DNA from: Marsupella aquatica
Lineage: Eukaryota; Plantae; Marchantiophyta
Assembly (NCBI GenBank): GCA_973895155.1
Contig: OZ316899.1
Coordinates: 3,679,455-3,743,454 of the forward strand
Direction: 5' to 3'
DNA length: 64,000 nt
Shown: positions 13,685 to 62,269 of the stretch, piece by piece
Layout: each line of letters opens with the position of its first letter
How positions within the stretch are numbered: the stretch's first letter is position 1
The notes under the pieces: model-generated
The model's input: the letters and a program-made list of their open reading frames with translations, nothing else
The model's database searches: none
What the model was told of the DNA's origin: nothing
Made by a program: the position numbers and the translations under genes

Positions 13685-13699
13685 CACTAGTACATTTTT

Positions 13700-14230
13700 G
13701 ACGACTTTCCGATACTCAAAATGCGACTATTTTGTTATGTCCAAACCCGAGAGTCTCGGACGTTGTCCGATACAAATACCTTCATAATGTCTGATGTGCA
13801 CCGCATCGGATTTAGTTAGTCCGATGTGTTCCCTAACGCAACCAATATCCCATATCGGTTACATCGGAACATTTCCAAACTAAATGAATCAGACATTTGA
13901 CCAGAAAAGTATTGTCAAGGGTCCGATCTTCAGGTTATCGGATACAATGTGCGTTAGAGACAACATCGGATATTTTCCGATGTTTATTCCAATGGACATG
14001 GTTTTCGTAATAGAATACTATGGACATAAATTGCGTAAGGTAAAGAATCAGAAACATTTCCGAAGTGGTCAATATCGGACCCCTCTGTTGGAACATTGGA
14101 CGAGGGGTCCGATGTTTCCAATATCGGATGTGAGTGTTCCAATAGTTGTGATATCAGACAATTGCTACAATTGAGCCTTTTGTGCTCCGATGCATATCCG
14201 ATGCAAGTTTCATCGGATAGACCATTGGAC
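13700..14230. repeat. Left subterminal array of ATCGGA/TCCGAT motifs of the CACTA element
   Basis: Many direct and inverted (C)ATCGGA(C/T) and TCCGAT copies. Confidence 0.85.
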
Positions 14231-14408
14231 ACAGGTTATCTTGAGGTTCTTAGTTGAGTGGGGTTGAGAGAAGTATTAGAGATACTTTATGGAATATGTT
14301 TTATGCAAGAGTGGACATTGAGAAACAAATATAGTGCCGAGAAATATATAATGTCGGGAAAATAAACACAAATATGGTAGGGGGCTAGCTATAGTTGCTA
14401 CTTACTAG

Positions 14409-17400: not shown

Positions 17401-17528
17401 CTCGTCAACATGATCTTCGGTTGGATTGCCCCCCTCATGCTGTACCTCAGTCTCCTCCCCACGATTGGCCACCATGGCCTCAACAAGGTGTTGCCGCATA
17501 GCTCGTGATATTACCCCAATATCAGGCA
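14409..17528 (-). pseudogene. CACTA TnpD/TNP2-type transposase (Transposase_21-, DUF4218- and DUF4216-like regions), multi-exon and frameshifted
   Basis: LKYEVIHACVNDCILFRG, RHVRLGLAADGISPF, SVWPVVLTNYNIPPW, IIPGPKQ..IDIYLQPLIDEL, WTMHDLPG (16.3-17.5 kb); HLLDPMHIEGNV and LKTHDYHRLL (15.2-16.1 kb); YGKIEEIL..KCKWF..DPFAFP (14.4-14.95 kb). Intron donor at ~16388. Confidence 0.93.
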
Positions 17529-17627
17529 CTACATATTGGTTCTATCATACAACATGCATCCATGTAATGACATCAACATCAATCTTGCCAACAATCTCAT
17601 TAATCCAACATTAGAAATGGAAAATAA

Positions 17628-17632
<5 letters not shown>

Positions 17633-17666
<34 letters not shown>
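17633..17666. repeat. (AT)n microsatellite, ~17 units
   Basis: Directly visible. Confidence 0.95.
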
Positions 17667-17669
<3 letters not shown>

Positions 17670-17680
17670 AGCCCAAGAAA

Positions 17681-18265
17681 CTAAGTTGGATGAGAACGTA
17701 GAGACAATTTTGGTGCATCCCAGTCATAATCACACAATAACTCCTCTCCCGCTCTAATGATCCTAATGGCCACTGTCATGATGTGGTCATCCATATGTTT
17801 CACAAAATATGGGTCTCTAGGTGGACCAAACATTTGGATCCACTCTACATTAGCCTCCAAATCTCTACCTCTACCTGTGGTACTATTGATGTATCCTGCT
17901 AAATTTCCATTCCTAACAGGGTCACCGTCAATCATCCGACAATGCCATGGCCTAGTGAACACCTCGTCTGGGCCTGAGTCCATCCTCAATGCATACACCC
18001 CCCAACTTGGGTGTTGACGCAACAAAATGTTCCAACTCTTTGCGTTATATACAGCCCCAATATAAGGGAAAAGGTGCTCTCCATCGTAGCCACGTCTCCA
18101 TGGCTTTGGAGGGACAACAATGTCATCCAAAGCATATAGACCATATCCTATATCAGCACCAATAGAGGACTCCTTCACTATCCAAGGACGGCCCCGTATC
18201 TCCACAGGTTCATCAATAGGAATGTAATCTGGAAATTTGAAGACACTGGGAGAAAAGTCTTTCAA
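17681..18265 (-). CDS. SET-domain (lysine methyltransferase-like) ORF carried inside the CACTA element
   Basis: IVKESSIGADIGYGLYALDDI (GxG motif), LFPYIG, IDGDPVRNGNLAGYINS..AN (variant of RFINHSCxPN) and VAIRIIRAGEELLCDY (GEELxxDY) occur in the canonical SET order. Confidence 0.8.
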   Translation of the reverse strand: MKDFSPSVFKFPDYIPIDEPVEIRGRPWIVKESSIGADIGYGLYALDDIVVPPKPWRRGYDGEHLFPYIGAVYNAKSWNILLRQHPSWGVYALRMDSGPDEVFTRPWHCRMIDGDPVRNGNLAGYINSTTGRGRDLEANVEWIQMFGPPRDPYFVKHMDDHIMTVAIRIIRAGEELLCDYDWDAPKLSLRSHPT

Positions 18266-18353
18266 AACGTCTGCAGCCCTGCCAGTGAGATAGGATACTC
18301 CAAATCGGCCCTCAACGCCATGTAATCTACATTTGTTGGAGGACGATCACTAC

Positions 18354-18944
18354 CTAACACCCCCTCCCGGATGTCTATGTGGTCCACAGGCTCGTACTGC
18401 CGTCTACGTCTATGAGACCGTGCTCGTGTACGTAGGAATCTTGAAGTCCCAACCTCTGGCTGAGATACTGGTTCTCCCTCTACATGCTCATGTATGGGGA
18501 TAGGAGCTGGGGGGCTAAGAGGAGGATGGGCAGGGGGGCTGCAAGCAAGTCTCTAGCCCTTGCTAGGAATCCTTCTAGCCACACAGCCTCATCAACCAAA
18601 GGAGGTGGGGGTCTACGGGGCACCTATTTCAGCACACAATTAATTTAGTGTTATTTAAATGCAAGCCCAATTGGAGTTTCATGAATGGAATTAAAGGGGA
18701 GACATATATATTACCTGGCTAGGCAAGTACCCTGGTGTATCACCCTCATGATGGCCATAGTTCTTAGTGTGCTCACCAGTCTCCCAGGCATGTCGGACCA
18801 CAAGTCCCTTGCATCTCACACACCAGCAAGGTATGGGCCCTAGTGGAGCACGAGGACGCTCAAGAGGAGGGGTGGAGGAACCTCCCCCTCTGACGAGCTC
18901 GTGTCTGAGTCTGAATCCGACGTGGAACTATCGGATGTAGACAT
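18354..18944 (-). pseudogene. N-terminal exons with a transposase-associated-domain-like CxCxxC..H motif
   Basis: PCWCVRCKGLVVRHAWETGEHTKNYGHH at ~18.75-18.83 kb. GT-AG intron 18714-18624. Each exon needs one frameshift correction. Confidence 0.55.
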
Positions 18945-20270
18945 CTACATATCATACACATCCAACATGTAAGGCGGATTCAACAACTTATCATGTTTAA
19001 AACCACAATTAAAGAGATATATAAACATCAATTGCCCTACCTCAATGATACCCGCGCTTTGCCGTGCCTATTGGGCTGTATTCTCTACACACAAGGTGTG
19101 GGATATCCAAAATCTCTGCAGGGTGGAGATGAGTTACACAAATGCTGCATAAATGCAAAAAAGTACTTGACTGACTTTTGGCACACGATATATCAAACTT
19201 GCCAAAGCAGACCTCAATGTTCCAATCCAAAATGGATGGATGGGCCGGGGAATTACATCATACCTCATGGATGCGCGGTCTCACACTGTGCATAGTGCAT
19301 TGTCCAAGAACAAAACCCTACCTAGCTACCCCCCTCAACCCAAAAAAAACAAACCTAGCTACCCCTCGATCAAAACCTAGGTACTGCACATAAAATCCAA
19401 TCACAACCATTAGTGTAACAAAGGCTTAACATTATCCTCAAAAAATGTCTAACAATATCCTATGTATTAAAACCCTATACCAATAAATCCCAAAACCCCT
19501 CAAAGCCCTAAAGTCCTTCAAAGAGAATTGGGATCAATTATAGTAAAAGAGTAAATCTAGGTACCACTTACTAGCCAAAACACCTTGACTTATCCTTGCA
19601 TCCATCACTCAATGTTGAGCAAGTTAAGGCCCTATAATTACAATACTATACAACTTAGCTTTATAAATTTAGTGTGCAATAAATTAAGCATGCAATCACA
19701 ACCATATTTTAGTTATCTTAGGAAATACAAAGTCATGAACTAACCCCAAAATTGTAGTTGCGAAGAAGGAACTTGCAAGAGGCCGAGTAACATATACACA
19801 ATATGCCATCCCGTTCATGGTGTTACCTAAAAAAAACCGGATATATTCAAAACGACCACAAAAAAGTGACTACAACCCTCCCTTCTATTACCCCACCCAA
19901 TTACTTAATTCCATGCTCCACATACAAACCCAAACACCCAAACTAAACCCAAAGTAAATAGATTTGACCTCCTATGGGACCAAAACATGGAATCCGTCAT
20001 AGCTGATCGAGGGGTCCGATACTAAAACAAACAAAAGCACCATCGTAAAAGCAGGAGAAAGAAAAGCAAGGAGGGGTCCGAAGCAAAACGCATCGGAAGG
20101 TCCGATTGTAGGTCCAATTCTTTCGGCTTCGGACATTGTGTTGCATAAAGTATCGGAAACAACATACCTGTTTTCAAAAAATAAGTCCCGATGCGGATGC
20201 AAAGATCCGGGCATCGGGCCAAGCTTTGCATTCCGTGTTTTGCGAGGCCGGGAGGCTCAGGTAGACGTCG

Positions 20271-22664
20271 GTGGGCAAGGAGAGAGACATGGTGGGAGGA
20301 GGATCAGGTGGTGGGGATGGGGCTGGACCCTCTCGGCCTTATGATGAGATTATGAGGGAGATTTTTATGAGTAGGGCAAGGCTAAGTGCCGAGGATGCAG
20401 AGAGAGTTGTGCCACTTCTTCAGACCTTGATTGATGGATCCAGGATTGAGGCAGAGAAAGCTGCGGCTGCAACCATTGCTGCAGAGAAAGCTGCAAAGAA
20501 GAAGCAAAAGGAGGCAAAGAGAGGCAGGGAAGATGGTGAGGAATCCCTCTCTCCCCGAAAAAGAGAGAGGAAGCTTAGCAAGGCAGCTAAGGAGGCTGAG
20601 AAGAAGAGAGTGGAGGAGTTAAAGCGAAAGGAAGCTGAGAGAGCTCTGAGGCCTGAGCTAGCCCTAAACTCAGGTGGCTCCCCAATGCCGAGAGGATACA
20701 ATCTCTTCCGCAGCCAGTTCAAGCAGGTGGTGAAGGCCAATTTGGGGCCATTAGATTACTGGGGAAGGAAGACTGAGGAGGAGAAAGGTCAAATTCAAGA
20801 GCAAGTGAAGGAGCGATTCAGGAATGGGGCCTCCCTTGATGACAGGTTCTTGAATAAGAGGATATCAGCTTCACTTTCAGACATGCGAAATCATCAGAGA
20901 GAGAAGTTCAAGAAGTACCTTGCTGATTTGCCAATTGATTCAGAGGTGGTCAGGGAGCAGGGCTGTCCAGATGTGCTCTCCCTAGATGAGTGGGCAGCTT
21001 GGCTTGAGGAGGAATTAGCAATCCGAGCCTGGCAAAAAAAGAGACAATGGGACCACAAAATCAGCTTGGCAGAGGAGAAGCGGAAGGCGGGGAGGAAATT
21101 GACATCCTCCCCCTCCAACAGAACCTACGGCAGTGGGGAGCTCAAGCAGTACGATTAAAAGAGCCACCCAAGGACATCATCAAAGCATTGGAGCGAGTCC
21201 AAGGGCGGCCCATCATCACTCACCGCATGGGGCAAGGAGGCTCCAATCGACTGAAAGCAGAGTTCGTAAGTGCCTTCTCCCTCCTCCCTAGCTCCTCCCC
21301 CCCGACCACCTGACCTTCTCTTGCGAAAAGTGACTCAATTTCTGTTGCCGAATGCCTTTATGCCGTTTCAGCCCGATGTTTTTTGCTCTCGGGACTGTTA
21401 TGTCCGATACTCATCTGAAGCTTTTAGCATCGGACCTAGTATCGGACCTGTTCTTATGCCATTTAGGGTTACCGGGATCCGATACTATTCCGTTGCTTTA
21501 AGTATCGGAAACAGCATCGGACCCCTCGTAAGAACAACAGGTTTTTTAAAATGTTGCTCTTTCACTCAATTAGGGGTATGGTTTGCATTCTTCAGTACCC
21601 TAAGAAGGCATGGGACCCCTTACAAGAATTGGGAAAAGTTGGGCCGATGCAAAGACTAGTTTTCATGCTAATGGGTTTCTCGTTTGGTATTGTGATGTGT
21701 CAGGAGCGGGACTGGGGTTGACCTATTGGGCCGTCAGAGAGGGAGTTAGCAAAGAGGGATGGACCCCGAGCTCTTAAGCTCCACCTTGAGGAGGAGCTGG
21801 GAGAGGTAATTGGTGTTGAATTGGCCCTATATAGGTTCAAATTGTTTTTGGTTGTGGTCAATATTAGAGAGCTTTCAAGGAACTATGTTTTCAAATGCAA
21901 TTTAACCCTACTTATGTATTGTGCAGGATGAGGAGACAGGGTCTGATGAGGGAGAGGAGGGTGAGGGTGAGGAGGAGGGTGATGGTGAAGAAGGAGAGGA
22001 TGGCAAGGGAGAGGAGGGAGATGATTCTGAGGCATCTGTGCCCTTAGAGGGTGTGGCAGAGCGATCCGGGAGGGTGCCCCGAGTTACCCCTACCCCTGCA
22101 GTCCCTCATGTTGCCCCCACATCAGCACAGAGGGTAGGTCATATGGTGTTCATGGTGTGGCCTCCCATCAGTCAGGAGTGTCACGGAGTGCGAGGCCCGG
22201 CCCCTCAGGGGGTAGTAGAGGTGGCACGGGACCAGACCATCGCTCTGGAGTACTATCCGGTACACCTGGCTCTTCTCAACGAGTGGGTCGTGACATGGAG
22301 GATGGTGGCTCTAGGGGGCGAGCGCCATCACGTGAGTCTGGTGGGAGTACCGCACGGCATGGGCCACAGACAGCATCTGCAGGGGATGCATCCCATCACT
22401 CTCACAGGTCCGGAGGGGGAGATGGCTCCTTCCACTCTGCCGTGTCAGGGGGTTTAGAGGCATCTGTTGCACCTCAGCATCCTAGCGGTGCATCTAGTGG
22501 GTCAGGGTCCCGGCCAGCATCAGGCCAACCCACTGGTGAGTAGGTGGTTGCCACGGTTGTGGGCAGCTAGAGAGAGGAGGGGTCTTGTGTTCCTGGACCT
22601 GTACCACCCCCTCGTTCTCGCCCGAAGAAGAAGAAGGGACGCAACACACCTTTTTAGAGCTTAG
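20271..22664 (+). pseudogene. CACTA TnpA-like / Transposase_24-like accessory gene, multi-exon, divergent from the transposase
   Basis: ORF 20271..21158 (FRSQFKQVVKANLGPLDYW..QVKERF..ISASLSDMRNHQREKF). Further GT-AG-bounded acidic and Gly/Ser/Arg-rich exons at ~21.7 and 21.9-22.66 kb. Confidence 0.55.
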
Positions 22665-22959
22665 TGGCATGAGCTAGATATGTAGTGCATGGTAGCTTTT
22701 ATACTAGCATATATATGTACCATCTAGTATAGTAAGCTACCTAGGCTACTACATATTGTACATACCAGGGGGTTTCCCTTTTTGAATATGACATTTTGAG
22801 CTTGTACATATAACATTCTTTTGCATCAATCATAATTTAACCCAATTTGGCCCATTTCACCATGAAACTAACCCTAAACCTTCAAATACCAACCCCATGA
22901 GGCCCACTCTTCTATCAAGAAAGAATCACCCTTGTCCGTTACTAGTCCAATGCAATATA

Positions 22960-23520
22960 CATCGGAAAAACACCTAATTATCCCATGCTTTCAGTATCGG
23001 GACATCCGATACTCTGCTCTTCGAAAAGTCCTATACTAAACGCATCGGACCCCTCGTCCAGCAAGCATGACAAAAATCCAATGTCCGATACCGTCCATTT
23101 CAGACCATCCAATATAAAAACAATCGGATTGTCCGATACATGCAACATTGGACCTTTCGATCTATAATCCAACGGATGTTGCGATACTAAACGCATCGGA
23201 AACTCCGATGCTATAAATTACGCACATTGCGAAGCTCTAGGTAACAGAAATTCCAATATGATATGTATCGGACGCCAAGTTTTGCGATTAAGGTCACCCA
23301 AGTGGATATCCGACTCTCTTTGCATCGGATACAAAATAGTCCAAAATGGTTTGCTTTGGAAATACCTATGTAGAGAGAAACGGAAAGTCCAAAGATTGTC
23401 CGATGGTCGATGTCCGATATGTGGAGAATGGGAACATACGAAGCGGGTTACATTGGAAGTACCAAATTTAGTGTGCAACTTTCGTGAAGGGATCCGATGG
23501 AGATGGCATCGGATAAAGGC
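22960..23520. repeat. Right subterminal array of ATCGGA/TCCGAT motifs of the CACTA element
   Basis: Same motif repeated many times in both orientations. Confidence 0.85.
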
Positions 23521-23537
23521 CCAAAAATGTACTAGTG

Positions 23538-23705
23538 ATCCACAGCTTCCTGATTTTTCTTTGCCTTCTTGGGCTTGCAAACGACAGCTTGAGAGGTGAT
23601 GACAACCTTCTTCTCAACGTTTGGGGCCTTCTTCTCCACGTCTCTGACCATGGGAGTTTTCACAACAATTTTCTGGTTAAATGGCGCATTTGTTGTTAAT
23701 TCCTA
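23538..23705 (-). pseudogene. Upstream exon of the ParB/FCP1-like gene (continues in frame across the CACTA insertion)
   Basis: Removing 13685-23537 and one ATC joins ...KPKKAKKNQEAVD to IDENLSSTKL in frame. Acceptor-like GTGTAG|GAA at ~23706. Confidence 0.75.
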
Positions 23706-48270: not shown

Positions 48271-49365
48271 TGTGGTGCGTCCCATGGCTCTCTGAACCCA
48301 AGAAACCCCCTTGCACAAGCCAATTCCTGTAGGTTTTACTCTTAGCGAGGCTGGTTTTGCGGCTTAGCGGCATGGGATGCTGCTAACTTCCTTCTACTAA
48401 CATTTTACACACATATACTAGACAGATCCTTCATCGGGTCATGAGATACGTAGTCGGCCTCTTCTATGCCTTCCCTTGTCCTCCTCTCCTGGTCTTCCTT
48501 TAGGTATGTTTGGATTCCGCCGCTGGAATGATCCCCAACTGGCTTGGGTGAGCCGCTAAGACCTCTCTCAGCTCAACACATCCAACTCTTACTACCTTGC
48601 TTACTCTCTTCTTGGTTGATGTGGGCAATCTTCAAACAAGTTAATGCGACACACAAATAGCAAAATGACTCCTTTTGATTGAGTTATACCATACACTTGC
48701 CATACAAACAGTACTTCTCATACACAAGATCTGCAAACTAAGCCGTGAGGCCAACTCTATTCATCTCTTAGGTATGAGGAAACATGAATATACACAAGGG
48801 TCATAGCATAACTAACCGAGAGCTTCTTTAACTACTTGATCCCAGCCCTGCTAGTGCACTAAAAACTTGCTAAGGAAGAAGGCCCTGAACCCCCCGTTGC
48901 CCAGGTACTTATCCTGGCAGTGGATCTGCCCAATTTCTTGCAGCGTAAGCCTAATCTAACCTGACCATAATCTACCTATGTACAGCGGGGCAGGAGCACA
49001 AGTGTTGCTCTTACCAGTGGATCCACAATCCCACTAAGCTCAGTGTCAAGACCGTCATGGTAGTGGTGGCTGATCCTCAATGGACGCCCCCAACACTTCC
49101 TCTGCAGCCACTACCGTAGGTCCGTCCTCTGACAGATTAACTGCTCCGGACTGAGTCAACTCTCCATCGGCCTGACTGGGTCCACCCTCGGCTTTGGGAC
49201 TTGAGGCTCCTACATACATTTGGACTCCCGGCTCGTGTTCCGGCCTCCTTCTCTCCTTGGCCCCAGTAAGGGGTTTTCCTTGGTAAGTCGGCTTATGCCG
49301 ACTTTGGGAGCAATATTTTGTACCGGTCCCGTTGCCGTTCTCCTTTCCTTCTCCAGCAATTTCAG
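48271..49365 (-). repeat. 5' LTR, distal (3') segment
   Basis: Matches 39217-40400 and ends at the MULE TSD. Confidence 0.92.
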
Positions 49366-49802
49366 GGGTATAACCACCGTGACAGCAAATAGTAAATAGA
49401 TTTGCTGTTACGAGCAAATTTTTGCTCATATGAGGCTTTCAATGACTCATAGCAGAAAATCTGTTTACTCATATGAGAAACTATTTACTTGTACGAGTTT
49501 TATAGGTTATTCAAAGTTCAAAAAAATGGCTCGATGTTAAAAAATAACAACCATATAAGCGCTCTCTAAAATGCTAACATAATGGGGCCCACCATTCAAT
49601 GATAATAAACGGGAAATATAAAGGTCATTATAAGAAGACGCGCTTTATTTAACAGTCAATATATTTGCTATGTGTTTCAAACTTTGGCTAGCGCCAGGCG
49701 CTACCAATAGACAACACATTTTTCTAGATAAGAAACGGGTACATCTTATGCCCGTTAGAAAAAACAAATGCCACTTAAAGCTGTTGAACGACACCAAATT
49801 GA

Positions 49803-52800
49803 CTACATGTCCGTTCCATTTTGTCGATCAAGCAGGTAACGAACTTCGCCCAATGTCAGAACTGGTTGACTAGATAGTGTCGAATCGTGAAGACTCAACT
49901 TTAACACAGTCCTGAATACCCAATATAGATGTTTGCAAGGCATGTAAGGTTTCCTATAAATGTGCCTCCGATAGAAATCCTCACATGAACAGCAAGGGAA
50001 ACAACAAATCTGCACCCAATAAGAGGCAGCATTCCTCTCATGTTCATGTGTTCTGATACAATACTGCTTCCCCCACGCATTCCCACTCGTGACATCTCTC
50101 TCGCATACGAGCCTCATTACTTCTATTTCGGATGCTTCAATCTTCTTGTAATGTGTTTGAGTTAGATTCACTCTCTGCAAGCACTTCCTTCCATTCCTAG
50201 AGCCACATTTGAAAATTGGGTCTGCTAAATTGATCCTCTCTTAACAAATTCACATCGATGCGTAACTCAGACGGGGATGGCTCCTGAGCTTCCCTTACCT
50301 CTCCTGTACCAAGTAGACCTTGTTCTCTCAAGAATTGGATCTCGCCCTCCTGGAGATTGGTCCCTCTCGCAATGGGAAGAACGGATGGTATATTGGGAAT
50401 GTTTGAAACACCTCTTCTTGGCCGACTTTTGTGACATTTGTTGTTTGGGCAAAACCATATCTGGTCCGGATGAGGTTCTCCTCTAAAAAGTCTACATCCT
50501 CTTACAGATATTGCAACAACTCCTTCTGGATTTGGAAACTCAACCTTCTTTACTCGATTTCGACCTTCATTGCGGCTTCCTCTCCAACCGAGGGTCCCAT
50601 TACAAGCTGGACCAGCACCGCGTTTTGCAGTTCATCGGAGCTGCCAGAGACCTGGAGCTATGTCAGTTTCCATTGGGAGAAGAGATTCCTTAGGCGCGGC
50701 CTTAGCTTGATGTCCTACGGGAGGAACAGAAGATCTTGTTGTCCGACGTGAGGGTGTCTCAAGGACGACAACCTCCTCAGAATCTTCACTCTCAGTTTGA
50801 GACAAATTAACAACGCCACTTCCACCAGCAGAAGGTGTGGAAGACATCTTCTCAAAGTCTGTGGAATGGAGGTTTCTTCTCTTCAAACCCCTTGTATTTG
50901 GTGAAGTCACAAGGATAGTATCATGCCTGTGAGAGTCTTGTGCCGAGACATTCCCACTTGCATTACCTTTTCGCTTCACCGATCGAGTTATGAAGTCTCC
51001 ATTCAATGGAACAGTTCTTTCCAAATCAAATTTAGCTGCGTTGGAAAGAAGGAGATTGGTCGCTTCTTCAAATAGACGTGGAGACCCTGTCATGTCGGCA
51101 GATCTGAAAGCCAGCTCAAAGATAGTGGGTCCAGTTCCCCGATGTAATCCTCGACCGTATGCAGTATATGCTGCTATCTGACATACGGCTCGGTTTTGGT
51201 CAGTTTTGCACCCCTCCATGAGGCCAACCCGCTTCTTCATTTGCCACGCCTTCATGCCTGCATGGACCAATTCCGAACCAGTACAATTCGGAATCATACT
51301 TGCCTCCTCATCACTCTTGCTCTGTCATGGGAAACAAAATTTAGTAACTACAGTAATTCGCGACAAATGTAGTTTGTATTTATGCAATATGGACTCTCTA
51401 ATATATAAGTAGCGCCTGGCACTATCAAATCTCTTGCATCACTGCCATGTTTGTAGTTGCAGAAGTGTGCTTGTTCATACTAGCGCTTGGCGCTACTATA
51501 CTGTAACAAGGAATTGGAGTTAAAATAATCATTTTCCATATTAGCGTCGGGCGCTATTACAAATCAATGGTAACGGACTATCATGAATCTAAGAAAATCC
51601 TTACCAGCCTAATGAAGTTTCCCCATTGTCTCCAACGGACGACCCACCATGAGAGCCACCCTTGCAACATTCGAAGGTTCCCCTGATGGCAATTTCCAGC
51701 TCTCCACCAATCGTCGATCTCTCTTGACATACGATATGCGTCCAATTTTTTTTTTGCGTTACGAAGACCGTCCCACATCTTCTTGTGTTCTTTGAGTTTT
51801 CCTTCTGGAACACCTTCGCGAGAATGCCAACGAAATGACTGATAAAAATGAAACGCATCTGATCGCTCTCGGTCAGGATTAGGTACCCCATTGAAGAAAA
51901 CATTTTGCACCGCATTCCATCCAGCCTGGGCATTGTCCGCCATGAATCCTCGAATTTGAATGTTCTCCAGGCCATTTTCACTCGCAACTTCTATCATCAA
52001 TCGCCACGCTCTCTCTAAGGACTTGGTGTCTTCAGCCTTTAATTCACAAGTGAAAATTGTACAAAGCGCCCGATAGTGATGATCATATACATGAACACTA
52101 AAAGTTAGCCAATCCGATGTAATTCTATGCATGACGTCGAAACTCACCCATGACCCTTCTAATGAACCACCGGTCTGCATTTTCCGGAGAAGGTCGATCC
52201 CAGATCCTTCGCCTTTCACAGTCATCTTGAAGATGTGAGCACTTTTGTCTCGACATCCTTGTCCTGGAAGCAAATACCTATGAAGAAAGGGAAGTCTCAC
52301 ACACTTTTGCATCCGCACCAAATATTCAAGCTCACCTTTGCCTTTCTGGTCTTGTCTCACACTTCGTAGAACAGAAGCAAACTTTTGTGGGGTAGCAACA
52401 ACCATGAGGGACTCCCAGATCTCCTTCTCCTCTTCTGAAGACATTTCCTCCACGGATTCCTCACAGAGGGCATTGGTTAGAGAGTTGTAGCCGCATTCTT
52501 TATCCCAGCGGGCGTAGCTCGTGGATTAGCCTGGAACTCCTTTGCGAGGTGAGTCTTGGCAACCTTTTCAGCCTCTCTCAACCACACTCGACGACTGGGA
52601 TGGTTGTGAAATCCCATGTGCACAGCCATCCGGGACATATACGCCAAATGAGTTGAATCCACTTTGGCCGAAGGATACATATAGAACATCATGGCCGGAC
52701 ACGATCTTGTACACATCGGAGGTTCAGAACAGTGGTGACAGACAATACCACCTTGCGGTATGAGTTCTCCAACTTGAAAGGTTCCTGATAGTTTGGTGAT

Positions 52801-53495
52801 CTCGCCCAGACTTGGTTGTTCCTAGTCTTTTTGTCTCTCCAAAATTGGCAAGAATTGTTCCGACATTCAAGAGAACCGGTACATTGAACCTTTCCAAAAT
52901 CCCACATCTTCTTCGGTAAAACATTCGAAGATGTCTTGACAATGCGCGTCCAGTAATAGCAATCCTTCCCGCGGTCCATGTCCTTCAGTCGTTCCCCTTT
53001 TGAATTCACGCAATCGACTGGAGGCAACTCAAACACAACATTCCCATTGTATGTCATCGGGAGGCTGGGAACTATCTGATGCGTGAAATCCTTCTCCCTG
53101 ATGAAACGAGATAACTCGCTATGTCCCTTCGATTTTAGGATAGTATCCATCGCACTTTGCCGATATACAATTGGGACATCTTGAACCTCCATCTTCACCA
53201 CCAAGGGATCCACTGAGATCCTTTTTGGGACATCAAAGGAAAGGGGCAAATTCTTCCCGTCGTCTTCCGAAGTGTCAGACAGATTGACAACATCAACACC
53301 ACCGGGAACAGGACATAGATCTTCCAATGCTTCAGAATCTTCCAAAACAAAGACCTCGTATACTTTCTCCGGATACATCGTCCAAAACTTGAGTCCATCG
53401 ACGACATCATAGAAGATGGTATTTGCCTTTGAATCCTTAGGGAGGAGGGACACAGAGAGAATACACTCTTTGGAAACATCAAATCTCAACCCCAA
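49803..53495 (-). pseudogene. MULE transposase with N-terminal GCM-like domain, DDE core and C-terminal SWIM finger
   Basis: YNGNVVFELPP..YWTR..CTGSLECRNNSC..CPA..RMAVHMGFHNHP (GCM/WRKY-like fold); SFDVMHR..GFMADNAQAGWNAV..DAFHFYQS (MULE DDE-like); CSCEDF..PCKHLYWV (SWIM). GT-AG intron 51604-51322; stops and frameshifts present. Confidence 0.82.
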
Positions 53496-54241
53496 GTATT
53501 AATCCAAAACTCTCCTTGACTGAGATTCAGGGGATACGATAACCGTGACGACATCCCGCGTGTCCTTGCGTCTCACTACGATCGATCGTCCCATTTCAGC
53601 GGAAGATAATAATCGATGTCTCACTTCCCCAATCGGTTTAAGGCTTGTTTAATGTACAAGGTTAATAACGACAATATAAACGAACGTTGAATAATGACAA
53701 ATAAAGTTACGTTAATGGTTTGGACAATGTAAATCAATTGAATTTTGTCGTTATTCAACGGCTGTATTGAACCAGCTTAATTGTCGGGAGTTTAATAGCG
53801 CCGGGCGCTACTTTTGTGAACGGGGAACAACTTGACAATGGAAGCATGACTCTCGACCGAATATAGTACCGCATGGCGAGGAGGATAGGGAAAACTCAGA
53901 TCGTAATAATAGCGCTCGACGCTATCATCAAAGCTTGTACGTTATACCTCTAACAACAGACAGGAAATCCGTGACTCGATCCAAGTATGCACGTGTGCAT
54001 TTAAGTTTTCACAATCGACGCATCTCGGACGTCAATTGCACGATCAAAAACCATTACATCTGAGACGTCCACGGAAATCTGAACGTTCTCACCTCTATCC
54101 TCAAAACCTGGCCGACGAGTCTGCCTCTCACCATTTGAAGTTCTTTGTTCTCATAAACATTTTTTGCGCTCCCGCGTCCGGTTTCATACGAGAAACCTTT
54201 TGTTCAGTCTCGATCATTCAGAGTTGTTTGTTTAAGTTTCC

Positions 54242-54667
54242 ATGGCTCCACCACGAGCTAAGGGGAAGGCACAGGTTACATTTCGAAGCGGTAGTGATGG
54301 AGAGGGCGCTGAGGAGAAGTCTCTCGTGAAGCCTCCTTCTCATTTGAACGTCCCGATCTCGGCGAAAGGGAAAGTAATTGCAAAAACCCGGGTTGTATCC
54401 GCACCAGATGGTGCTCCTCAGGCTAAAGCAGAAGTTCAACCCGTCACGCAGAAATGTCGGGTGTCAAAGGCGGGCTTATCTTTGTCGAACCTGCCACCTA
54501 GACATGAAAAAAGTTCTTCAAGTGAAGGCGAGGATACAGGCGATGATGCAGGGACCCACGACGAGTCGGGGTCCAACGACGACTCCTCCTGTAGTCGGGG
54601 TGGGTTTTGCTGGGGCGTTGGTTCTAGCGATTCCAACGATGATTCGGACGCGTACAAGCCAAGCTAG
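54242..54667 (+). CDS. Low-complexity S/D/K-rich ORF, possibly the first exon of the MULE cargo gene
   Basis: 141-aa ATG-initiated ORF (MAPPRAKGKAQ...) just downstream of the divergent intergenic region. The splice link to 55807 is not established. Confidence 0.4.
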   Translation: MAPPRAKGKAQVTFRSGSDGEGAEEKSLVKPPSHLNVPISAKGKVIAKTRVVSAPDGAPQAKAEVQPVTQKCRVSKAGLSLSNLPPRHEKSSSSEGEDTGDDAGTHDESGSNDDSSCSRGGFCWGVGSSDSNDDSDAYKPS

Positions 54668-55462
54668 TGGGAAGATTAACTGATCAACTGATCCTGGAGA
54701 TTAACGCATGGACCGTCTGATCCTGGAGAACCCAGTAGTCCTGAGTAGATTACCAACCTCATTTGGTGGAGTTTGATGTTGACAGCCACGACCAGTTGAT
54801 GCAGTGATGGTAGAAATGGTAGTCAATCTTTTGCCAGCATGATAGTCTCGGAATCTATTGGGAGGTTACTCTCATGTTGTTACTCAATATTTCGAGACTT
54901 TGTGAAGTAAAGCCAATACCATTAAATGGAGTTTGAATCTATTAGCCATTCCCTTATGCATTTTTCATTATTCAGTTTGTGTTTTTTGATGTTTTGCCTT
55001 ACGGGAATGAGTAAATCTTTTCACCAAATGTCTTTTGAAAGTCTTCGTAATGCTTGTAGTTTTTGATGGAATGGTCTTACCCATGACAGGTTCCATATTA
55101 GCGCTCGGCGCTAGCATTGGAATGCTCAAACTTATGCTTCTAACACCAGATGGATTCTTAAATATTTGTGGATATGTAAGAGTTTGTATTACTCTCTCGT
55201 GATGAGTAACATCGATTTGGATGTGATTTATGATAGCGCCGAGCGCTAATAACGCTTATGGATAAAATGGTCCAAATAATGTCCATTTTGTCCATCTATC
55301 CATGAATTCCATTTGAATTGTGTAAAATATATATGTGTGGGAGATTTGTTAGCGCTCGGCGCTATTGAAATTAGTAGTTTGAATCAGGTAATATGGAGTT
55401 GTTTTTGCTAGCGCTTGGCGCTATCAATAAGGCCAAAACGATCAACGGTCATATTTTAACGG

Positions 55463-55540
55463 TAACACTGAGGATTGCTAGTCACGCGTAACCTTGAGGA
55501 TTGCTGGTCACGCGTAACATTGAGGATTGTTGGTCACATA
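55463..55540. repeat. 26-bp tandem repeat x3
   Basis: TAAC(A/C)(C/T)TGAGGATTG(C/T)T(A/G)GTCAC.. at 55463, 55489 and 55515. Confidence 0.9.
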
Positions 55541-55806
55541 AGACGGTTTTTTGGTCCAATGGTAATCTTCCAAGTGTTCAGATCTGTTGGTGTTACCATT
55601 GAGCAACACTCTAATGTGCTCAAGACTCCATGTCTTAACCTTCTGATTAGGCTTGGCGCTCGTGGGAGAGACGTGATTCTCCTGGACCAGCCTGTTTGAG
55701 CGTGACATTCTATACCTGAGTCTGTTACTCCGTACTGGATCAGGGGCTCTAGGAGAGTTGTACGATATTGTCCGACGTTCTGCTCAACGCCATCACCATC
55801 TCTCAG

Positions 55807-58800
55807 TTGGGTAATACGAAGATGGGAGATAGTCATGCCGGTCATTCCGAGTCCTCACAGTCCTCTTTTTCAGGTTCTGTGTACACCCGTCACGTGACTT
55901 GGTCCGCTGCGTCTCATTCACATTCAAACATTGGCTCAACTCTTCCGACTGCGCGATCAAGAAGGGGGAGAATGGACACGAGTGAGGAAGTTGCTCGAGT
56001 TGATTTTGGTGTTGCTGGACTTTCAATGGACGATTACATTTCCAAGCATGTCTTGTCCTTTGGGAAAGATTTCAGAGGATTGGAGAAGGAGCCTCCACAA
56101 ATACCTCTATGTAGATTGATTCATATGGAAGTGGTGCGGACGTTGCAGAAGCAGAGCGCCTCCATCGACAAATTGAAGGAGTCATTCTGTATTTCTGGAT
56201 ACAATTCGCGCATGGGCATGCTATTTTACGTACAGCCAACGAATGCGGATGGGGTTCCACAGATTTGCACTAATGAGATTAGAGCCACTTGGGACCCAAT
56301 CTGGGTTTCCGAGAATGACAAGTTCGAGGAAGAGTGTGACGCTGATCCTGATTTCAGAGTTTTGAAGGACAAGATGTTTTGTGTCTTCGATGGAAATCAC
56401 CATTTGTATTCGTGGTCGATTGTGACAGCAGAGCATCCGGACAACATTAAGTACCACCCTCGTGTGACTTGCATTGTTTTCAATGGAGATAAAGGTTCCC
56501 TCGTGGAGCTCGAGGCTGCTATGCACGCTGTCTACCAGTAAGCCATTACTCAGGACCTCATTTAATATGACGTACTAGTTCAAGATGGATTTTGGATGTG
56601 ATATTATCTTTGGTGTTTTACTAGCGCCCAGCGCTGCTAATTTACATTTAAATTTTGACATAGGTTGGGACAAGCTGTGGTCGAGCCATCTTGGATTCTT
56701 GATGCCGACAAAATCTCTCATCTTTTATCCCGTGACCTAGAGCACTACAAACCCCTCATTGATGCTACGAGTTATGCTAAGTTTGAAGCCATTCGAAAGA
56801 AGACTCAAAAGGGTTCTTGGTATATACACAAGATGCCACAAGACGCGCTCATCTACATTTTGTGTGAGAACAAGATTAAATCTTACACAAACCAATTCAA
56901 AGTGGACATGGATTTTGTAGCCTCCCAGGGGACTCCGTGGTCCGAAGAGGAGACGCAGAAGAGGCATGAAGCTATGATGAAGGAAGCGACAAAAGACTGG
57001 GCTATCAAAGTAACAAAGATCACTCCATTGCTGCACCCTGATTTTGGTGACTACTTGGCTACATGTGCCGAAATGTTTCCCGTCACAGAGAAGAACAAAA
57101 GAGAAAAAAAGCCCGATACAGTTGTTTGCACTATGGACCGTGCTCGTCTGTTTACTGCAGTTACTTATCTGGATCCGAAGTTAAGGTGTACCCTTCTCGT
57201 TGCCCATTGCACTCCGGAGATTCGGAAACAGTTCTTTCATCCGGCTAGTGTGAACGACGATCCTGTAAAACAATGGTGCCATACCTGGCATATCTGGAAT
57301 TCAGTGGAGGAAATTGCTACTGGATTGATCCTCACCTCGCTCGAGCAGGTTTTGGATTGCATGCCAGATGATCGTCTTGTCAAGTCTGGTTGTGAGTCCC
57401 TGGATGTTCTCATGAAGTCCATTATCAAAGAATTCAAATCATTTGGAGACCTTGTCAAGGCTAAATTTTTCAACATAATGTGGCCATCAAAGTATGCAGA
57501 CAAGGAGGACTACACTGAGCAAACCCAGAAACGAGCCAAGCGATACGTTTACCGTTTCTACATGTGGATGGAGTTGCGATCTCCTGAGGTTTTGTGGGCT
57601 TACCTTGGTGCATTTCAAAAGTGGGTGATTATCAAAGATGGTGACCACCTTGTTGATCTGTATTTGATGTACCCAGTTGAGGGAAAGTTCCCACCTTGCG
57701 CCTTGTCAGAGTGGGAGAGACTCCACTGCCCATGGTATCTTGACACTGACAAATGGGATTTGCCTTTCGACGAGGTGGAGAAAGACGCTTTCATGAAGTT
57801 ATAGAAGTTGCAAATCCCAGCAAGGTACATATCGGAGATGAAGCAGGGTCTTGCGATTGAAGTGGACGCTTCGACAACTGAACTGCAGAAGAAATGCGAG
57901 ACAGTCGTCGTGCATGTTGACCGGAGCCGAAAGCCAAGAGTGAAGGCCAAGAATGAATCTGCAGCTCCCAGTGAATCAACTTGATCGCTTAAAAAACATA
58001 AGTTTGCCTCTTAGGATTCAGTAAAGTATTCCCGCTCTTGTTTGTATGACGTATTTTCCCCCAATTGATACTAGTGCCGAGCGCTATTATGAGAACTAGT
58101 TCCGTTGAGTAACGCCTCTCCGTCTTTCAGGGGGAAGGAAGTCGGATGCTACCGGTGATGTAAAAGAGGACGCTACTCCTCAGGCCTCTGAAGCTAACAC
58201 TGGTGCGGAAAATACACCAGATCAGGGAACCCCTGGGGAGAGTGGAAAGGCAGTGGTTCCAGTGGACGCGACAAGTATGAAGAAGAAGAAAAAGAGAGGA
58301 ACACTTGAGGATAGGCTCGGATCTTCGTCCCGAGATTCAATTGCGTCTACTGGATTGCAAAGAGATGTGGGGAATTTCAAACAAAAGTGTACCTCGACAT
58401 TGTTTTGTGGAGTCGAGTGTTACAGAATGTTTTGATTCCCTGTTTAACAAGGGAGAAAAGCCGGACTGGGTTTCTAATATTGAAGGTTGGGGGAAAGAGC
58501 TGGTGAAGTCTGGGGATCGAGAAAAAGGGGTTGTCCGAGGGGGAAAAGAAAGAGCTTTTGGAGTTGATGCTGGTTTCATATATCTTCCGACTGAGTTGAA
58601 ACCAACACTTGTGGATAGGAAGGTTCCTAAATGGAACCTTCAAGATTATACGATTCCAAGTGCCTTTTTCAGAACAATGGATCCTTTCCTAGCAGAAGAT
58701 GGATTGCTAGCGATTTTGCACAGAGGCGACTATGACCAAGTTTCCGAGGTCATTGCAGCTTGTCAAGATTCATAGAAATTCCAGTGTATCTCGACACACA

Positions 58801-59515
58801 ATGTTGTTATGGGCACTCCAATGTACAGGCCTCGCTCGGATATGCAGGTATGTATAGTAGCGCCTGGCGCTATTCCAAAGTTTCTGTTTGGTGTCCTCCT
58901 TTGGAGATTGACGGCAACGCTAGCGCCAGGCGCTAGTGTGGAATATCCTCTTTGTGAAATGTTTCCGTATTCTCGACGTAGCATCTGATGTTTATTATGA
59001 ACAAAACGTTATTCGATGTGCAGATTTTTACGCTCACTCTCAATGTTTTTGGGCGTGTTTCGTCCAAAGGTAGGGTCCCTAAGGATCCCAAATTTTGGCC
59101 TCTTTCACATATAGAGGATCCTTCAATAACCAATCTCATTGGTTTTCCCGTGCCAAAAAATGATCCTCTGCCGGAGCTTGCGTTCGCCCGGAATTCAAGG
59201 CTACCTGTGGGTTTCATACAGTTCGTTTTAGAATTAATTACCCTCCCTGGGGATATTGTCATGGACTGGACTGTTGGGGCCGGAAGTACATTTGTTGCTG
59301 GAGATCATTGTGGGAGGTTTGTAGTCGGGATTGAAAATTGTAAAGAGTTTCTCGACACTGCCACAAAAGTTTTCTTTGGACTTCTCAAGAATAAAGAGGC
59401 CTCCACGTCCACGCCTCCGCATCGGCAGGTGGGGAGTAAGAAGCAGGACAGACTCCGTGCTGTTCTTAATTTTGATTCTGACGAGGACAATGATGGAGGC
59501 GATGGTACGCAATAG
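55807..59515 (+). pseudogene. ParB/Srx-like domain + beta-class N6A/N4C DNA methyltransferase-like fusion gene, spliced, with premature stops
   Basis: ParB-like: IPLCRL..VRTL..IDKLKESF..GY...VFDGNHH (56389-56403). MTase-like: VDAGFIYLPT..FLAEDGLLAIL, then RLPVGFIQFVLELITLPGDIVMDWTVGAGSTFVAGDHCGRFVVGIE (motifs X-I-II). Introns 56538-56663 and 58848-59023 restore the frame exactly. Stops at 57802 and 58773. Confidence 0.78.
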
Positions 59516-60572
59516 TCCAAAGATGATGGGGCCTCCAAGAAAGTGGTGAACCTCGGGTCTTCTGAATCTGAGGATAGTGAAGAGTCTTCTGAGTAATGAT
59601 CTTCAGCTTCCCTGTTTTTTTTTTCTTTTGAAGTGTGACGTTAGTGTCTCCAACATTCCACCATTTTCCCGGACCCGACTAAAGATATCGGATTCAACTT
59701 TCCAGGTCTGAGTGGAATCTTTGGAAGCGCTTTCAACTACGAAGGAAAGTCGCTAGGAATGCAATAGAAACCCCGGAGAAGCCGTTTGTCTTGCCTTCTT
59801 ATGCAGAAAAGGCAGCTCGAAAAGCAGATTCTGTGAGAATGTTGACTTGGGAAAGCAAAGGCCTGAGGCTAAAAAGGGGCTCTGATAGAAAGTTTACGAA
59901 GAATCCCTATGTCGATGACATCATCCCGAGAAAGTATGTAGACGACGAAGCTGAGTCTACTGATAGATCACAAAGTAGTGAAGAAGAATCAGAACTAGAT
60001 TCGACTGATTCAGAATCTGATGGCTAGCCAGACTTTAAAACTTTTGGGGATATAGATATTGGCTATTTTACAAAATAGCGCTTGGCGCTATTGTGAACAC
60101 ATGTAATATTGATGGGTGTTTATAAAGTGAGATGGACTGTCCACATTGTTTTTTGACTAAACTTTCCTCTGTGAAGCGGACAATCTTAACTTGGGATGTA
60201 TTACAGTTGGGTGATATTAGAATACGACTTCCCCCTTTCCCAATGTTTCATCAATTGGCATCTGATGGTCTTTAGTTGATCTCTGTTTTTAAGTCTGTTA
60301 TTGAGGTCTGTATACTAGCGTCGGGCGCTAGTATACATATGTTTTGGGGGATACTTTTGCATATATCGTTTCGAATGAGGTTTCGGGTATTTTGGACTGT
60401 TTCAGGACTGTAGCGTTGGGCGCTAGTATTACGATGTGTTTCAAAATGATGGATTTTAGAGGTTTCGATCTCATTTTACGAGAGATGTCGGATTAGGGAA
60501 GATTTTTTTGGTGCAGACATTTGCTGCTATGAGCTTTACTGTTTGCTGTTTGCTGTCACCATGAAAAGCCTC

Positions 60573-62269
60573 CAATTTCAGTAGATTTTGCATGCCTGGT
60601 TGCTGCATTGGCAAGTCTTCCTTCCTCGGCCTAAACACCTGCTCGATTGTAGGACTATCGGGCTGGGTCGGTTTCTTTGTTGCCGGCCTCTATTCCAGAA
60701 CCTCCTCTGGTGCTCTTGCCTGTAGGGGAAGTACCGGGGCGAATATCTGACTTTGGGCATACCGGCACAACAGCGGCATATGATAGCCAAGCCGGGACAC
60801 GCTTCCCTTGCCAATCACCTGTTGTTCCTCCTTCAAGATTTTCTTCAATTGGGTGAGGAGGTATCCGTTGTAGTCCCGGCTGGGGTCTGGCCTCTCCGCC
60901 AGGTAAACCTGTGCCTTGCCGATCTCTGGCCTCGACAAGTTGCAATGCATGGTTACCTGCAAGAAATTGATCATCTCCCCAATGTGCGGGTTGGTGCAGG
61001 TGTTCCGGAAGAAGCCATTCTTTGTTGATGGCCCTGGGAACGATTGGAACTCCTTGTCAGGCAAGGTCTTCCTGGTATCAACTTTGGTCTTATTGCCCAT
61101 CGGCAAGCCAAATGCTTTGGCAATCACTCGGGGAGTGAGATAGAAATCCTTCCCATACACCCTTGTGGAATTGGACTTGGGCTCCCAGGATCCCACAAAT
61201 TCTAATAAGTCTGAATCCGGCACCTCCGGCTTCAGCCATGGTAACTTCACAAAGGCTTCCAAGCCGAGTCCGGCCATGAAGCCTTGGTACTTCCAAGTCT
61301 GCATAGCCGTAAAGCATGCATCCTCTTCACATGCAAAGTGTAATTGCACTTCCTCGGGGAGGGTCGCCACCCAGCCTTTCCAGGTGTCATCTCTTGTCGG
61401 AACGACATGGATGGGGTCGACCTCCTCTTCTTTGGCTTCTTCCTGCCTCCTGCTCCCTTGCTCGACTGGCTTCCTTGGTGCCGCCGACCTCGTTCTCTTT
61501 GTAGGGGTGGTCTCTTCATTGATGTTCCCTTTTCTCTTCATAGCGGCTGCCGTGGATGTTTCTTCTAGCACGGTTGCCTTCGTCCACCCCTCCGTGATAC
61601 CCTTCAACTCCCAGTGTATGTCGTTGCAGCGGTTGATGGCTTCCCAGATGCCAACTATTTTGTTCTCACAAAATAGAAGATCGTCGAGTTCGTCGGCAGT
61701 AGGCATCCACAGGAATTTAGTCGTGATGAGTTCTCCTCCTAAGAAGGCAGACTTCTGCAGCTCCCACAGTCGAGCGAGCTCCTACCATTCTCGAGCGGCT
61801 CTCTCCGATTCTTCGTCCTTGTAGGTCCCAATGTACTCAGTTTCCCGTTCTAACAGGCATCCCCAAAAATGAGCAACTTGATTGACGTTGCTCATACCCT
61901 TCTTGAGTTGATTATCGGTATCTGCTTCCACCCCGAGTGCTTGCCTGAGCAGCGGACAGTAGTTGGCCTCCGGTAGTTGTCTGCTTGGTTCGTGCTTGCA
62001 AATGAGCCACCATTCCTTGCGATCAATCCTTACCCCTCCCTGACTGGTCTTCCTTCCCGTTAGTTACCCATAGCCGCCGGCACTTAGCGCGCCCTAACCC
62101 TAATCGTGTTCCCCCCCGATGTTCTTACTTCCGGCCTCGGCTCGGGTTCCATAGCCACCCTTAATTGTTTATATTTTCCATCTTTTTGCTACTATACTAA
62201 TGTGTTTCCAGGGTTTACTCCTTATTTTATCATTTAAACTGGCCTAGTTATTCCTGGCTAGGCATCACA
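60573..62269 (-). repeat. 5' LTR, proximal (5') segment
   Basis: Resumes exactly where 49365 stops and matches 40400-42073. Confidence 0.92.

Follow-up and report, generated by a model that had tools for sequence, protein, structure and literature searches.

We describe here an 11,207-bp Mutator-like DNA transposon that occupies positions 49366-60572 of a 64,000-nucleotide stretch of the liverwort Marsupella aquatica (contig OZ316899.1, positions 3,679,455 to 3,743,454 of the forward strand, assembly GCA_973895155.1). This whole stretch is called the window, and coordinates are window coordinates unless a locus is named. The element is a structurally complete yet mutationally dead copy of a high-copy, two-gene transposon. 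Its genes are arranged head to head, with a transposase on the minus strand and, on the plus strand, an accessory gene whose predicted product begins with a ParB/Srx-fold domain, continues through a large conserved domain (domain B) and ends in a part that resembles amino-methyltransferases of DNA. The same pair of genes is found in elements of another liverwort, Riccia sorocarpa, and the non-coding DNA of the element carries an array of palindromes whose sequence differs from lineage to lineage. Our preferred reading, to which we assign a probability of roughly 60%, is that the accessory protein acts in cis on these palindromes.

Boundaries and state of the element

The element is directly flanked by an exact 9-bp target-site duplication (TSD), CAATTTCAG, at 49357-49365 and 60573-60581. 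Its extent is the one proposed in an earlier interpretation made from the letters of the window alone (the sequence-only reading), which had described an 11.2-kb Mutator-like element bounded by a TSD, and the duplication and inverted termini bear that description out. The ends begin GGG on the left and GAG on the right, that is G(G/A)G, and a perfect 11-nt inverted core, GTGACAGCAAA, sits 13 nt inside both of them; the terminal inverted repeat returned by an inverted-repeat finder measures 47 nt and is 72% complementary. A 9-bp duplication with short imperfect termini is typical of the products of Mutator-like transposition. The length of the duplication lies within the ~8-11 bp of the Mutator superfamily, and terminal inverted repeats, the other mark of that superfamily, are present. 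When the element was removed in silico, no clear host open reading frame (ORF) was restored across the insertion site.

Word depth at the locus is in the hundreds to thousands in four public DNA runs from two organisms, and the transposon family is therefore high-copy. The differences that are private to the window copy, as read from a comparison of window 54200-60100 with contigs of the DNA runs, are mostly A for G and T for C. Such an excess is what the deamination of methylated cytosines leaves behind in a silenced copy as it decays.

The transposase gene

The minus-strand gene consists of five ORF blocks in the order 53495-52689, 52716-52477, 52453-51581, 51297-50632 and 50180-49803. Riccia sorocarpa loci contain a homologue of each block, at 34-48% identity and in matching order. 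The first three blocks (T1-T3) form a single ORF of 549-783 amino acids (aa) in the intact relatives P0203-P0211. When the window copy is read against these homologues, two frameshifts break up T1-T3, one near 52770 and the other near 52478, and the transposase gene of this copy is therefore dead.

In the family alignment of the transposase, two aspartates, one in WVxFDVMHR and one in GFMADNAxAGWNA, are invariant or nearly so and stand 67 residues apart, and a SWIM-like CSC-x16-CKH is invariant in the alignment of the window transposase with those of two Riccia elements, with no match to PF04434. A language-model neighbour search placed the transposase core among MULE/ZSWIM RNaseH-like families in 10 of the 10 matches that bore a family. 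Pfam, including the MULE/MuDR profiles PF10551 and PF00872, gave no match for any transposase ORF, for 16 relatives or for eight long intact relatives, and a PDB sequence search with a long relative yielded nothing meaningful. On the TSD, the termini, the motifs and the language-model neighbours, we call the gene a transposase of the Mutator-like DDE/SWIM type, which agrees with the minus-strand transposase of the sequence-only reading. Further relatives were found in Calypogeia fissa, in Adiantum nelumboides and in many metagenome or run-assembly contigs.

Conservation of the gene pair

At three Riccia sorocarpa loci (L001, L003 and L005) a homologous transposase and a gene of ParB, B and methylase-like composition lie head to head, as they do in the window. 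Identity between the window and these loci is 34-48% over the transposase blocks and 23-40% over the accessory-gene blocks, and the positions of two accessory-gene introns (1 and 3) are common to the window and Riccia. L001 is delimited by inverted termini with the core GTAACATATCAGCCATCAGCAA and by a direct repeat that is 9 bp long or longer; an exact 10-mer search for inverted termini and a TSD found none at L003 and L005, which leaves L001 as the only one of the three with resolved ends.

Between two Riccia lineages the nonsynonymous (pN) and synonymous (pS) differences are 0.19 and 0.93 in the ParB-like domain, 0.26 and 0.88 in domain B, 0.30 and 0.82 in the methylase-like domain, and 0.46 and 0.71 in the linker. 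Because synonymous sites are saturated while pN is only 0.19-0.30, we judge the ParB-like, B and methylase-like domains all to be under purifying selection. The near-identical Riccia copies L003 and L005 show five differences in mapped codons, which makes their dN/dS uninformative. Proteins of the fern Adiantum also carry the ParB-like domain, one of them together with the motif IV region of the methylase-like part, and a fern transposase homologue exists as well; the transposon lineage is probably present in ferns too.

Judged from these loci, the gene pair has been co-inherited across liverwort lineages under purifying selection. The sequence-only reading had called the plus-strand gene cargo. 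That word has to be given up, and the accessory gene is instead a conserved partner gene of the transposon lineage, not something loosely captured.

Palindrome arrays

The palindrome TAGCGC-N3-GCGCTA, with at most two mismatches, occurs 17 times in the element, where 0.73 occurrences are expected, and is absent from the other 53 kb of the window. Its sites lie in subterminal DNA, in the central spacer and in introns, both that of the transposase gene and all those of the accessory gene. C>T and G>A changes account for six of the seven mismatches. The spacer reads Y-N-R, so that the original site is reconstructed as TAGCGCC-N-GGCGCTA, a dyad of the form 7-N1-7.

Arrays of related lineages have the same odd-length dyad geometry, and each lineage has a palindrome of its own; in Riccia the arrays likewise occupy subterminal and central zones. 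L001 and L006 carry CGGCGG-N3-CCGCCG, and L002, the closest relative of the window element by sequence, carries TAGCGA-N3-TCGCTA. Two palindromes are found in L003 and L005, CAGCGG-N3-CCGCTG in subterminal DNA and CGGCGA-N3-TCGCCG in the centre (L003:8504-9372 and 14354-15102; L005:8450-9356 and 14527-14730). Written out for one Riccia element, the central site is CCGGCGAG-N-CTCGCCGG and the subterminal site is CCAGCGGA-N-TCCGCTGG. The presence of two palindromes in one element hints at two binding specificities. The only core that the palindromes have in common is GCG/CGC, with no conserved adenine.

Between lineages these elements differ more in their palindromes and accessory protein than in the terminal core (GTRACA...CAGCAA) and the transposase. 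Because the dyad sites change between lineages while the terminal core and the transposase stay alike, the comparison suggests a fast-evolving dimeric protein that binds the palindromes. The accessory protein is the candidate for this role, and the transposase is a possible binder too.

Two further observations concern the arrays. A metagenome contig (ERZ25039595 contig_565; L004:4252-8556) carries a distant ParB-like gene at 5475-6572 with ten 18-bp palindromes, ATGGTCGGRTCCGACCAT, distributed on both sides of it, and in the light of this locus, ParB-like genes may be accompanied by palindrome arrays beyond the present transposon lineage as well. At several joints between contigs of the DNA runs, the sequence jumps between two palindromes (55123 to 58853, 58090 to 60074, 55252 to 55345 and 55251 to 55438). 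Such joints suggest derivatives that arose by deletion from palindrome to palindrome; with short flanking matches of 22-27 nt, they could also be assembly artefacts.

Structure and domains of the accessory gene

From GT-AG sites, continuity of frame and Riccia gene models we infer at least four introns in the accessory gene (Table 1). The four public runs that cover the locus are DNA unitigs and contain no spliced joints, and the splicing is therefore a deduction from these three kinds of evidence. The related locus L002 shows a gap at the same place as intron 1. The donor of intron 4, at 59505, matches the end of a Riccia exon, and the last exon reaches about 60030. The putative 5' exon at 54242..54650 has no homology support.

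The spliced gene is still broken. In-frame TAG codons remain at 57802-57804 and 58773-58775, and there is a 1-bp insertion at 58392. Alignments with homologues run on in frame past the first TAG, and the second falls on a conserved W/F column. The extra base at 58392 is missing from most other copies, and its omission improves the alignment of the upstream frame with Riccia. The frame probably changes once more near 59760. We also considered the TAG at 59513 as a lesion and rejected it, since it lies inside intron 4, past the donor that is homologous to the Riccia exon end. The accessory gene of the window copy is a pseudogene. The sequence-only reading was right that the gene contains introns, and its proposal of two GT-AG introns that restore the frame exactly does not hold, given the larger number of introns and the three lesions that remain.

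The ORF that encodes the ParB-like domain (55768-56541) has 226 relatives among 1.84 billion representative proteins. Their consensus holds IPLCRL...VRP and F.VWDGNHR..AW, in which DGNHR is a motif of the phosphate-binding type of the family (DGxHR / GxxRxxA, G-x-x-R). The window copy reads DGNHH through a private G>A at 56402, and most other copies have G at this position and therefore DGNHR. An AlphaFold (AF2) model of the domain, built with 56 relatives, reached a pLDDT of 92.6. Compared with the PDB by VIA-align, this model gave Z 8.0 over ~98 residues at 2.8-2.9 A to Noc and ParB; 35 PDB chains scored Z >= 5, and every one listed belongs to the ParB/Srx fold family. The top Foldseek matches in the PDB were ParB/Noc/KorB/Srx/DndB, and the AlphaFold DB clusters and the ESM Atlas returned almost only ParB, Noc, KorB, PadC, sulfiredoxin, DGQHR and DndB entries. 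No significant match to Pfam (PF02195 and its clan) or to PDB sequences was obtained with the domain alone, with its profile (A1) or among its relatives, and a few of the 56 relatives gave sub-threshold DUF1015 and DndB matches. Membership of the ParB/Srx fold is thus supported by the model, with Z values that are middling, and membership of the sequence family is unsupported. Over window 11817-23705 the A1 profile found no match at E < 0.01; a second ParB/Srx-like gene in that region, if real, would belong to another family.

Among named families, DUF3723 (PF12520) lies nearest to the ParB-like domain in language-model features, with a score of 0.95 and 176 shared features. DUF3723 is likewise a conserved accessory gene family on mobile elements (fungal Starship); neither the window protein nor its relatives match PF12520 in Pfam, and we treat a relationship with DUF3723 as a lead only.

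Domain B, of ~380 aa (ORF 56665-57804), is conserved and follows the ParB-like domain in all long relatives. It had no match in Pfam or in a PDB profile search and resembles nothing known. The linker after it is basic/acidic, and together domain B and the linker put about 550 aa between the ParB-like and the methyltransferase-like parts.

The methyltransferase-like part gave a PF01555 match on 58988-59515 (E 3.7e-7; 30.8 bits against a gathering cut-off of 26.7), and Pfam detects only the C-terminal quarter of that profile. In the PDB the last piece of the window protein matches DpnA/M1.HpyAVI (E 4e-4) and CcrM. The family profile (A3) of this domain matches the same proteins at 1.4e-4 and 6e-4, respectively, and aligns CcrM over profile positions 87-290; the C-terminal part encoded by 58131-59504 aligns full length with the C-termini of the Riccia proteins. 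Both the CcrM and the family alignments show the permuted order of motif IV, target-recognition region, and motifs X, I and II. An AF2 model of the domain from a Riccia homologue has a confident core (pTM 0.70), and Foldseek with this model reached E 4e-10, with N6/N4 DNA amino-methyltransferases, mostly of the beta class, filling all of the top 44 places. The modelled C-terminus accordingly has the fold of a beta-class N6/N4 DNA methyltransferase. Both ends of the protein had been assigned in this way by the sequence-only reading, and structure (ParB/Srx) and profile together with structure (methyltransferase) now speak for these assignments. UniRef names four of the Riccia sorocarpa homologues (P0153, P0151, P0154 and P0163) 'Trimethylguanosine synthase'. 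Because their sole Pfam signal is a sub-threshold match to PF01555 and their fold is that of a beta-class DNA methyltransferase, this name is probably wrong.

Features of the window copy

The coordinates of the features are collected in Table 1. Just outside the right end of the element, at window 60690-61706 on the minus strand, there is an ORF of 338 aa with no Pfam match.

Table 1. Features of the Mutator-like element of Marsupella aquatica and of its flanks, in window coordinates
Feature	Position	Strand	Description
Left target-site duplication	49357..49365	.	CAATTTCAG, read directly; identical to 60573-60581
Left terminus	49366..49425	+	Begins GGGTATAACCACC, then inverted-repeat core GTGACAGCAAA
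Array of 17 palindromes	49689..60425	.	Confined to non-coding DNA of the element
Last transposase ORF	49803..50180	-	SWIM-like CxC-x16-CxH; 40-44% identical to Riccia loci
Transposase ORF T4, second coding block	50632..51297	-	tblastn 35-36% identity to L001, L003 and L005, same gene order
Putative transposase intron	51298..51580	-	First-exon ORFs of relatives stop just past T3; palindromes 51410, 51481, 51542
Transposase first exon, blocks T1-T3	51581..53495	-	Two conserved D 67 aa apart; frameshifts near 52770 and 52478
Central region between the divergent genes	53496..54241	.	Palindromes 53796, 53910
Possible 5' exon of accessory gene, uncertain	54242..54650	+	Low-complexity, acidic, serine-rich ORF; GT at 54651
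Cluster of four palindromes (55099, 55234, 55350, 55409)	55099..55423	.	5' intron or leader of accessory gene
Exon with ParB/Srx-fold domain (about 56005-56537)	55768..56537	+	DGNHH motif 56389-56403; 226 homologues
Intron 1, GT...AG, 126 nt	56538..56663	+	In-frame; matches Riccia exon boundary after ParB domain; palindrome 56622
Exon with domain B and start of linker	56664..57970	+	Domain B 23-27% identical to Riccia proteins; in-frame TAG 57802-57804
Intron 2, predicted GT...AG, in-frame junction	57971..58130	+	Absent from Riccia gene models; palindrome 58072
Exon with basic linker and N-terminal half of methyltransferase-like domain	58131..58847	+	Insertion 58392; motif IV YLPT 58581-58592; TAG 58773-58775
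Intron 3, CAG/GTATGT...CAG/	58848..59023	+	In-frame; position common to Riccia genes; palindromes 58858, 58921
Exon with motif X 59201-59239, motif I MDWTVGAGST 59261-59290, motif II VVGIEN 59321-59338	59024..59504	+	
Intron 4 and last exon	59505..60030	+	Donor G/GTACGC, acceptor uncertain; homologous to Riccia C-terminal exon (LPSYAEK..., NPYVDD)
Right terminus	60513..60572	-	Reverse complement begins GAGGCTTTTCATG, then GTGACAGCAAA
Right target-site duplication	60573..60581	.	CAATTTCAG, read directly

Proposed mechanism and alternatives

We propose that the accessory protein is a dimeric, sequence-specific factor that would act in cis on the DNA of its own element. It would recognize the lineage-specific dyad palindromes in subterminal DNA, in the central promoter region and, in the lineage of the window element, in introns. 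The ParB-like module would serve as a nucleotide-dependent switch or as a bridging module, and the methylase-like module would be mainly a part that binds S-adenosylmethionine (SAM) or DNA, not a standard methyl-transferring enzyme. The outcome may be that copies are kept accessible (an anti-silencing function like that of VANC or of Spm TnpA), that the ends of the element are brought together for transposition, or both.

Several points weigh against this proposal. The splicing of the accessory gene is deduced from the genomic sequence, the runs that cover the locus being DNA. Domain B, which is the candidate for the DNA-binding part, matched nothing, and the transposase was assigned to Mutator without a profile match, from the length of the TSD, the motifs and the language-model neighbours. 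Binding of subterminal repeats is common among transposases. Finally, the conserved D and P of motif IV, with the selection on the methyltransferase domain, leave catalysis possible.

This last point leads to the alternative that the accessory protein is an active, site-directed amino-methyltransferase that marks its own element with N6-methyladenine (6mA) or N4-methylcytosine (4mC) after being loaded at the palindromes by its ParB-like domain. We consider it unlikely, though a good deal can be said for it. The beta-class fold is complete and its motifs are in the correct order. The glycine loop of motif I is kept but altered (MDWTVGAGST in the window copy, IDFAGGWGAT in Riccia), and alignment shows the acidic residue of motif II (Glu) to be kept in the window copy and its relatives. 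Motif IV retains its aspartate and second proline from liverworts to the fern, and the methyltransferase domain is held by purifying selection (pN 0.30 against a saturated pS). Fusions of ParB with N6/N4 methylases are common in phages and plasmids, and a bacterial-type 4mC enzyme of a liverwort works at CG sites (bioRxiv 10.1101/2021.02.12.428880).

Against an active enzyme stands motif IV itself. The canonical form, (D/N/S)-P-P-(Y/F/W/H), is not found across the family, which reads D[LM]P[ST]G in Riccia, DFPIG in Adiantum and YLPT in the window copy, so that in liverworts and fern alike the first proline and the aromatic residue, the marks of an active amino-methyltransferase, are missing. 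In methyltransferases of this kind the aromatic residue stacks on the flipped base. The 4mC enzymes of Marchantia, DN4MT1 included, have a canonical motif IV, TSPPY (bioRxiv 10.1101/2021.02.12.428880). Moreover, only a quarter of PF01555 is found by Pfam, and the sole core that the palindromes share offers no conserved adenine. Because motif IV is non-canonical across the family, methyl transfer by the accessory protein appears doubtful, and a non-canonical module that binds SAM or DNA is the more likely description of its C-terminal part. The sequence-only reading had suggested a self-marking or anti-silencing system. Marking by methylation shares the doubt just expressed, and an anti-silencing or DNA-binding accessory role would fit the palindrome arrays better than self-marking.

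A little less probable again is a ParB-type loader that is joined to a DNA N-methyltransferase of non-canonical but functional type, is directed to parS-like palindromes throughout the element and there writes on the element's own DNA a mark other than 5-methylcytosine, or blocks CG methylation. If this were true, the family would provide a self-encoded epigenetic shield of a land-plant transposon that co-evolves with its own binding sites.

The palindromes might also be ordinary subterminal repeats bound by the transposase, with the accessory protein being unrelated to them, for example a transposition cofactor of the nuclease or NTPase type or a chromatin factor. The Riccia arrays are indeed concentrated in subterminal DNA, as in many DNA transposons, and nucleases and kinases are found among ParB/Srx domains of the DGxHR type (DndB, SbnI and a serine kinase among the matches). 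We give this explanation a small chance, because arrays are also found in the central promoter region and, in the window lineage, in every intron, one Riccia element has different central and subterminal palindromes, and the truly terminal repeats have another, more conserved motif.

That the plus-strand gene is a one-off capture in the style of Pack-MULEs, or a host gene lying between the termini, is hardly credible even though Mutator-like elements are well known to pick up host gene fragments often: the head-to-head pairs in several Riccia elements and the purifying selection on the gene refute a one-off capture, and the two intron positions held in common with Riccia and the many copies in the genome also stand against it.

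The preferred reading is that of a palindrome-directed accessory protein encoded by a two-gene transposon, of which the window holds a dead copy. Taken as a whole, the sequence-only reading is partly confirmed as a real and mostly accurate observation, and its interpretation partly supported. The outcomes that it had set as grounds for giving it up did not occur: related elements of another genus retain the gene beside a homologous transposase, and purifying selection acts on it. The reading was right about the domains, about their residence in a transposon and about conservation, and too optimistic about catalysis and about the intactness of the window copy. Its view that the accessory gene has a prokaryotic origin is plausible from the known distribution of the family.

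Relation to known systems

The nearest functional parallel would be VANC of the Arabidopsis VANDAL elements, which binds lineage-specific repeated motifs in non-coding VANDAL DNA and removes methylation (Hosaka et al. 2017, PMC5735166). Both are Mutator-type elements with an extra gene beside the transposase, and both have short repeated motifs in non-coding DNA that differ between related lineages. Unlike the accessory protein described here, VANC has no ParB-like or methyltransferase-like domain; the motifs of the window element are dyad-symmetric palindromes, and binding and hypomethylation have been demonstrated for VANC whereas for the window element they are inferred.

By domain content, the nearest structural parallel is the accessory cassette of red-algal Plavaka transposons, in which PAG2 combines PF01555 with SET and PAG3 combines a ParB-like domain with a 2OG oxygenase, with inverted-repeat arrays adjoining; such a cassette has also been reported from Mutator elements of Chondrus (bioRxiv 10.1101/2025.02.11.637652). 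The two systems have in common that PF01555 methylase-like and ParB-like domains reside in eukaryotic DNA transposons, that arrays of inverted repeats lie beside the ParB-like gene, and that the genes have been conserved with the element over the long term. They differ in that our family has both domains in one polypeptide with a large extra domain between them, lacks SET and 2OG domains, and is hosted by land plants (liverworts and probably ferns), and in the 9-bp TSD and SWIM-like transposase of the window element.

Prokaryotic mobile DNA often carries ParB-like domains fused to N6/N4 methylases (Iyer et al., PMC5512222, PMC4738411). These ParBc and PF01555 fusions of prokaryotes and phages have, like the present family, an N-terminal ParB-like part and a C-terminal beta-class amino-methyltransferase and are carried by mobile DNA. 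The window gene differs from them in the extra domain and linker of ~550 aa between the two parts, in its spliceosomal introns, in the non-canonical motif IV of its family and in a ParB part with no detectable sequence similarity to PF02195.

As an analogy of mechanism only, the family can also be likened to the accessory, non-transposase protein TnpA of the maize CACTA element Spm/En, which belongs to a different superfamily and is an unrelated protein. TnpA binds repeated subterminal motifs, some of them in inverted pairs, and promotes both transposition and demethylation. A full-text literature search found no paper describing a fusion of ParB and methylase in a Mutator-like element or in land plants.

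Few transposon-encoded factors that act on their own chromatin are known. The case worked out in most detail is VANC; for the red-algal accessory genes there is so far a description only. The family reported here is a two-gene Mutator-like lineage, old and under selection, that occurs in liverworts and probably in ferns; it combines a ParB-like switch, a methylase-like module and palindromes peculiar to each lineage. Current Pfam models miss both this clade of transposases and the ParB-like domain. Through this family the arms race between transposon and host becomes testable in early-diverging land plants.

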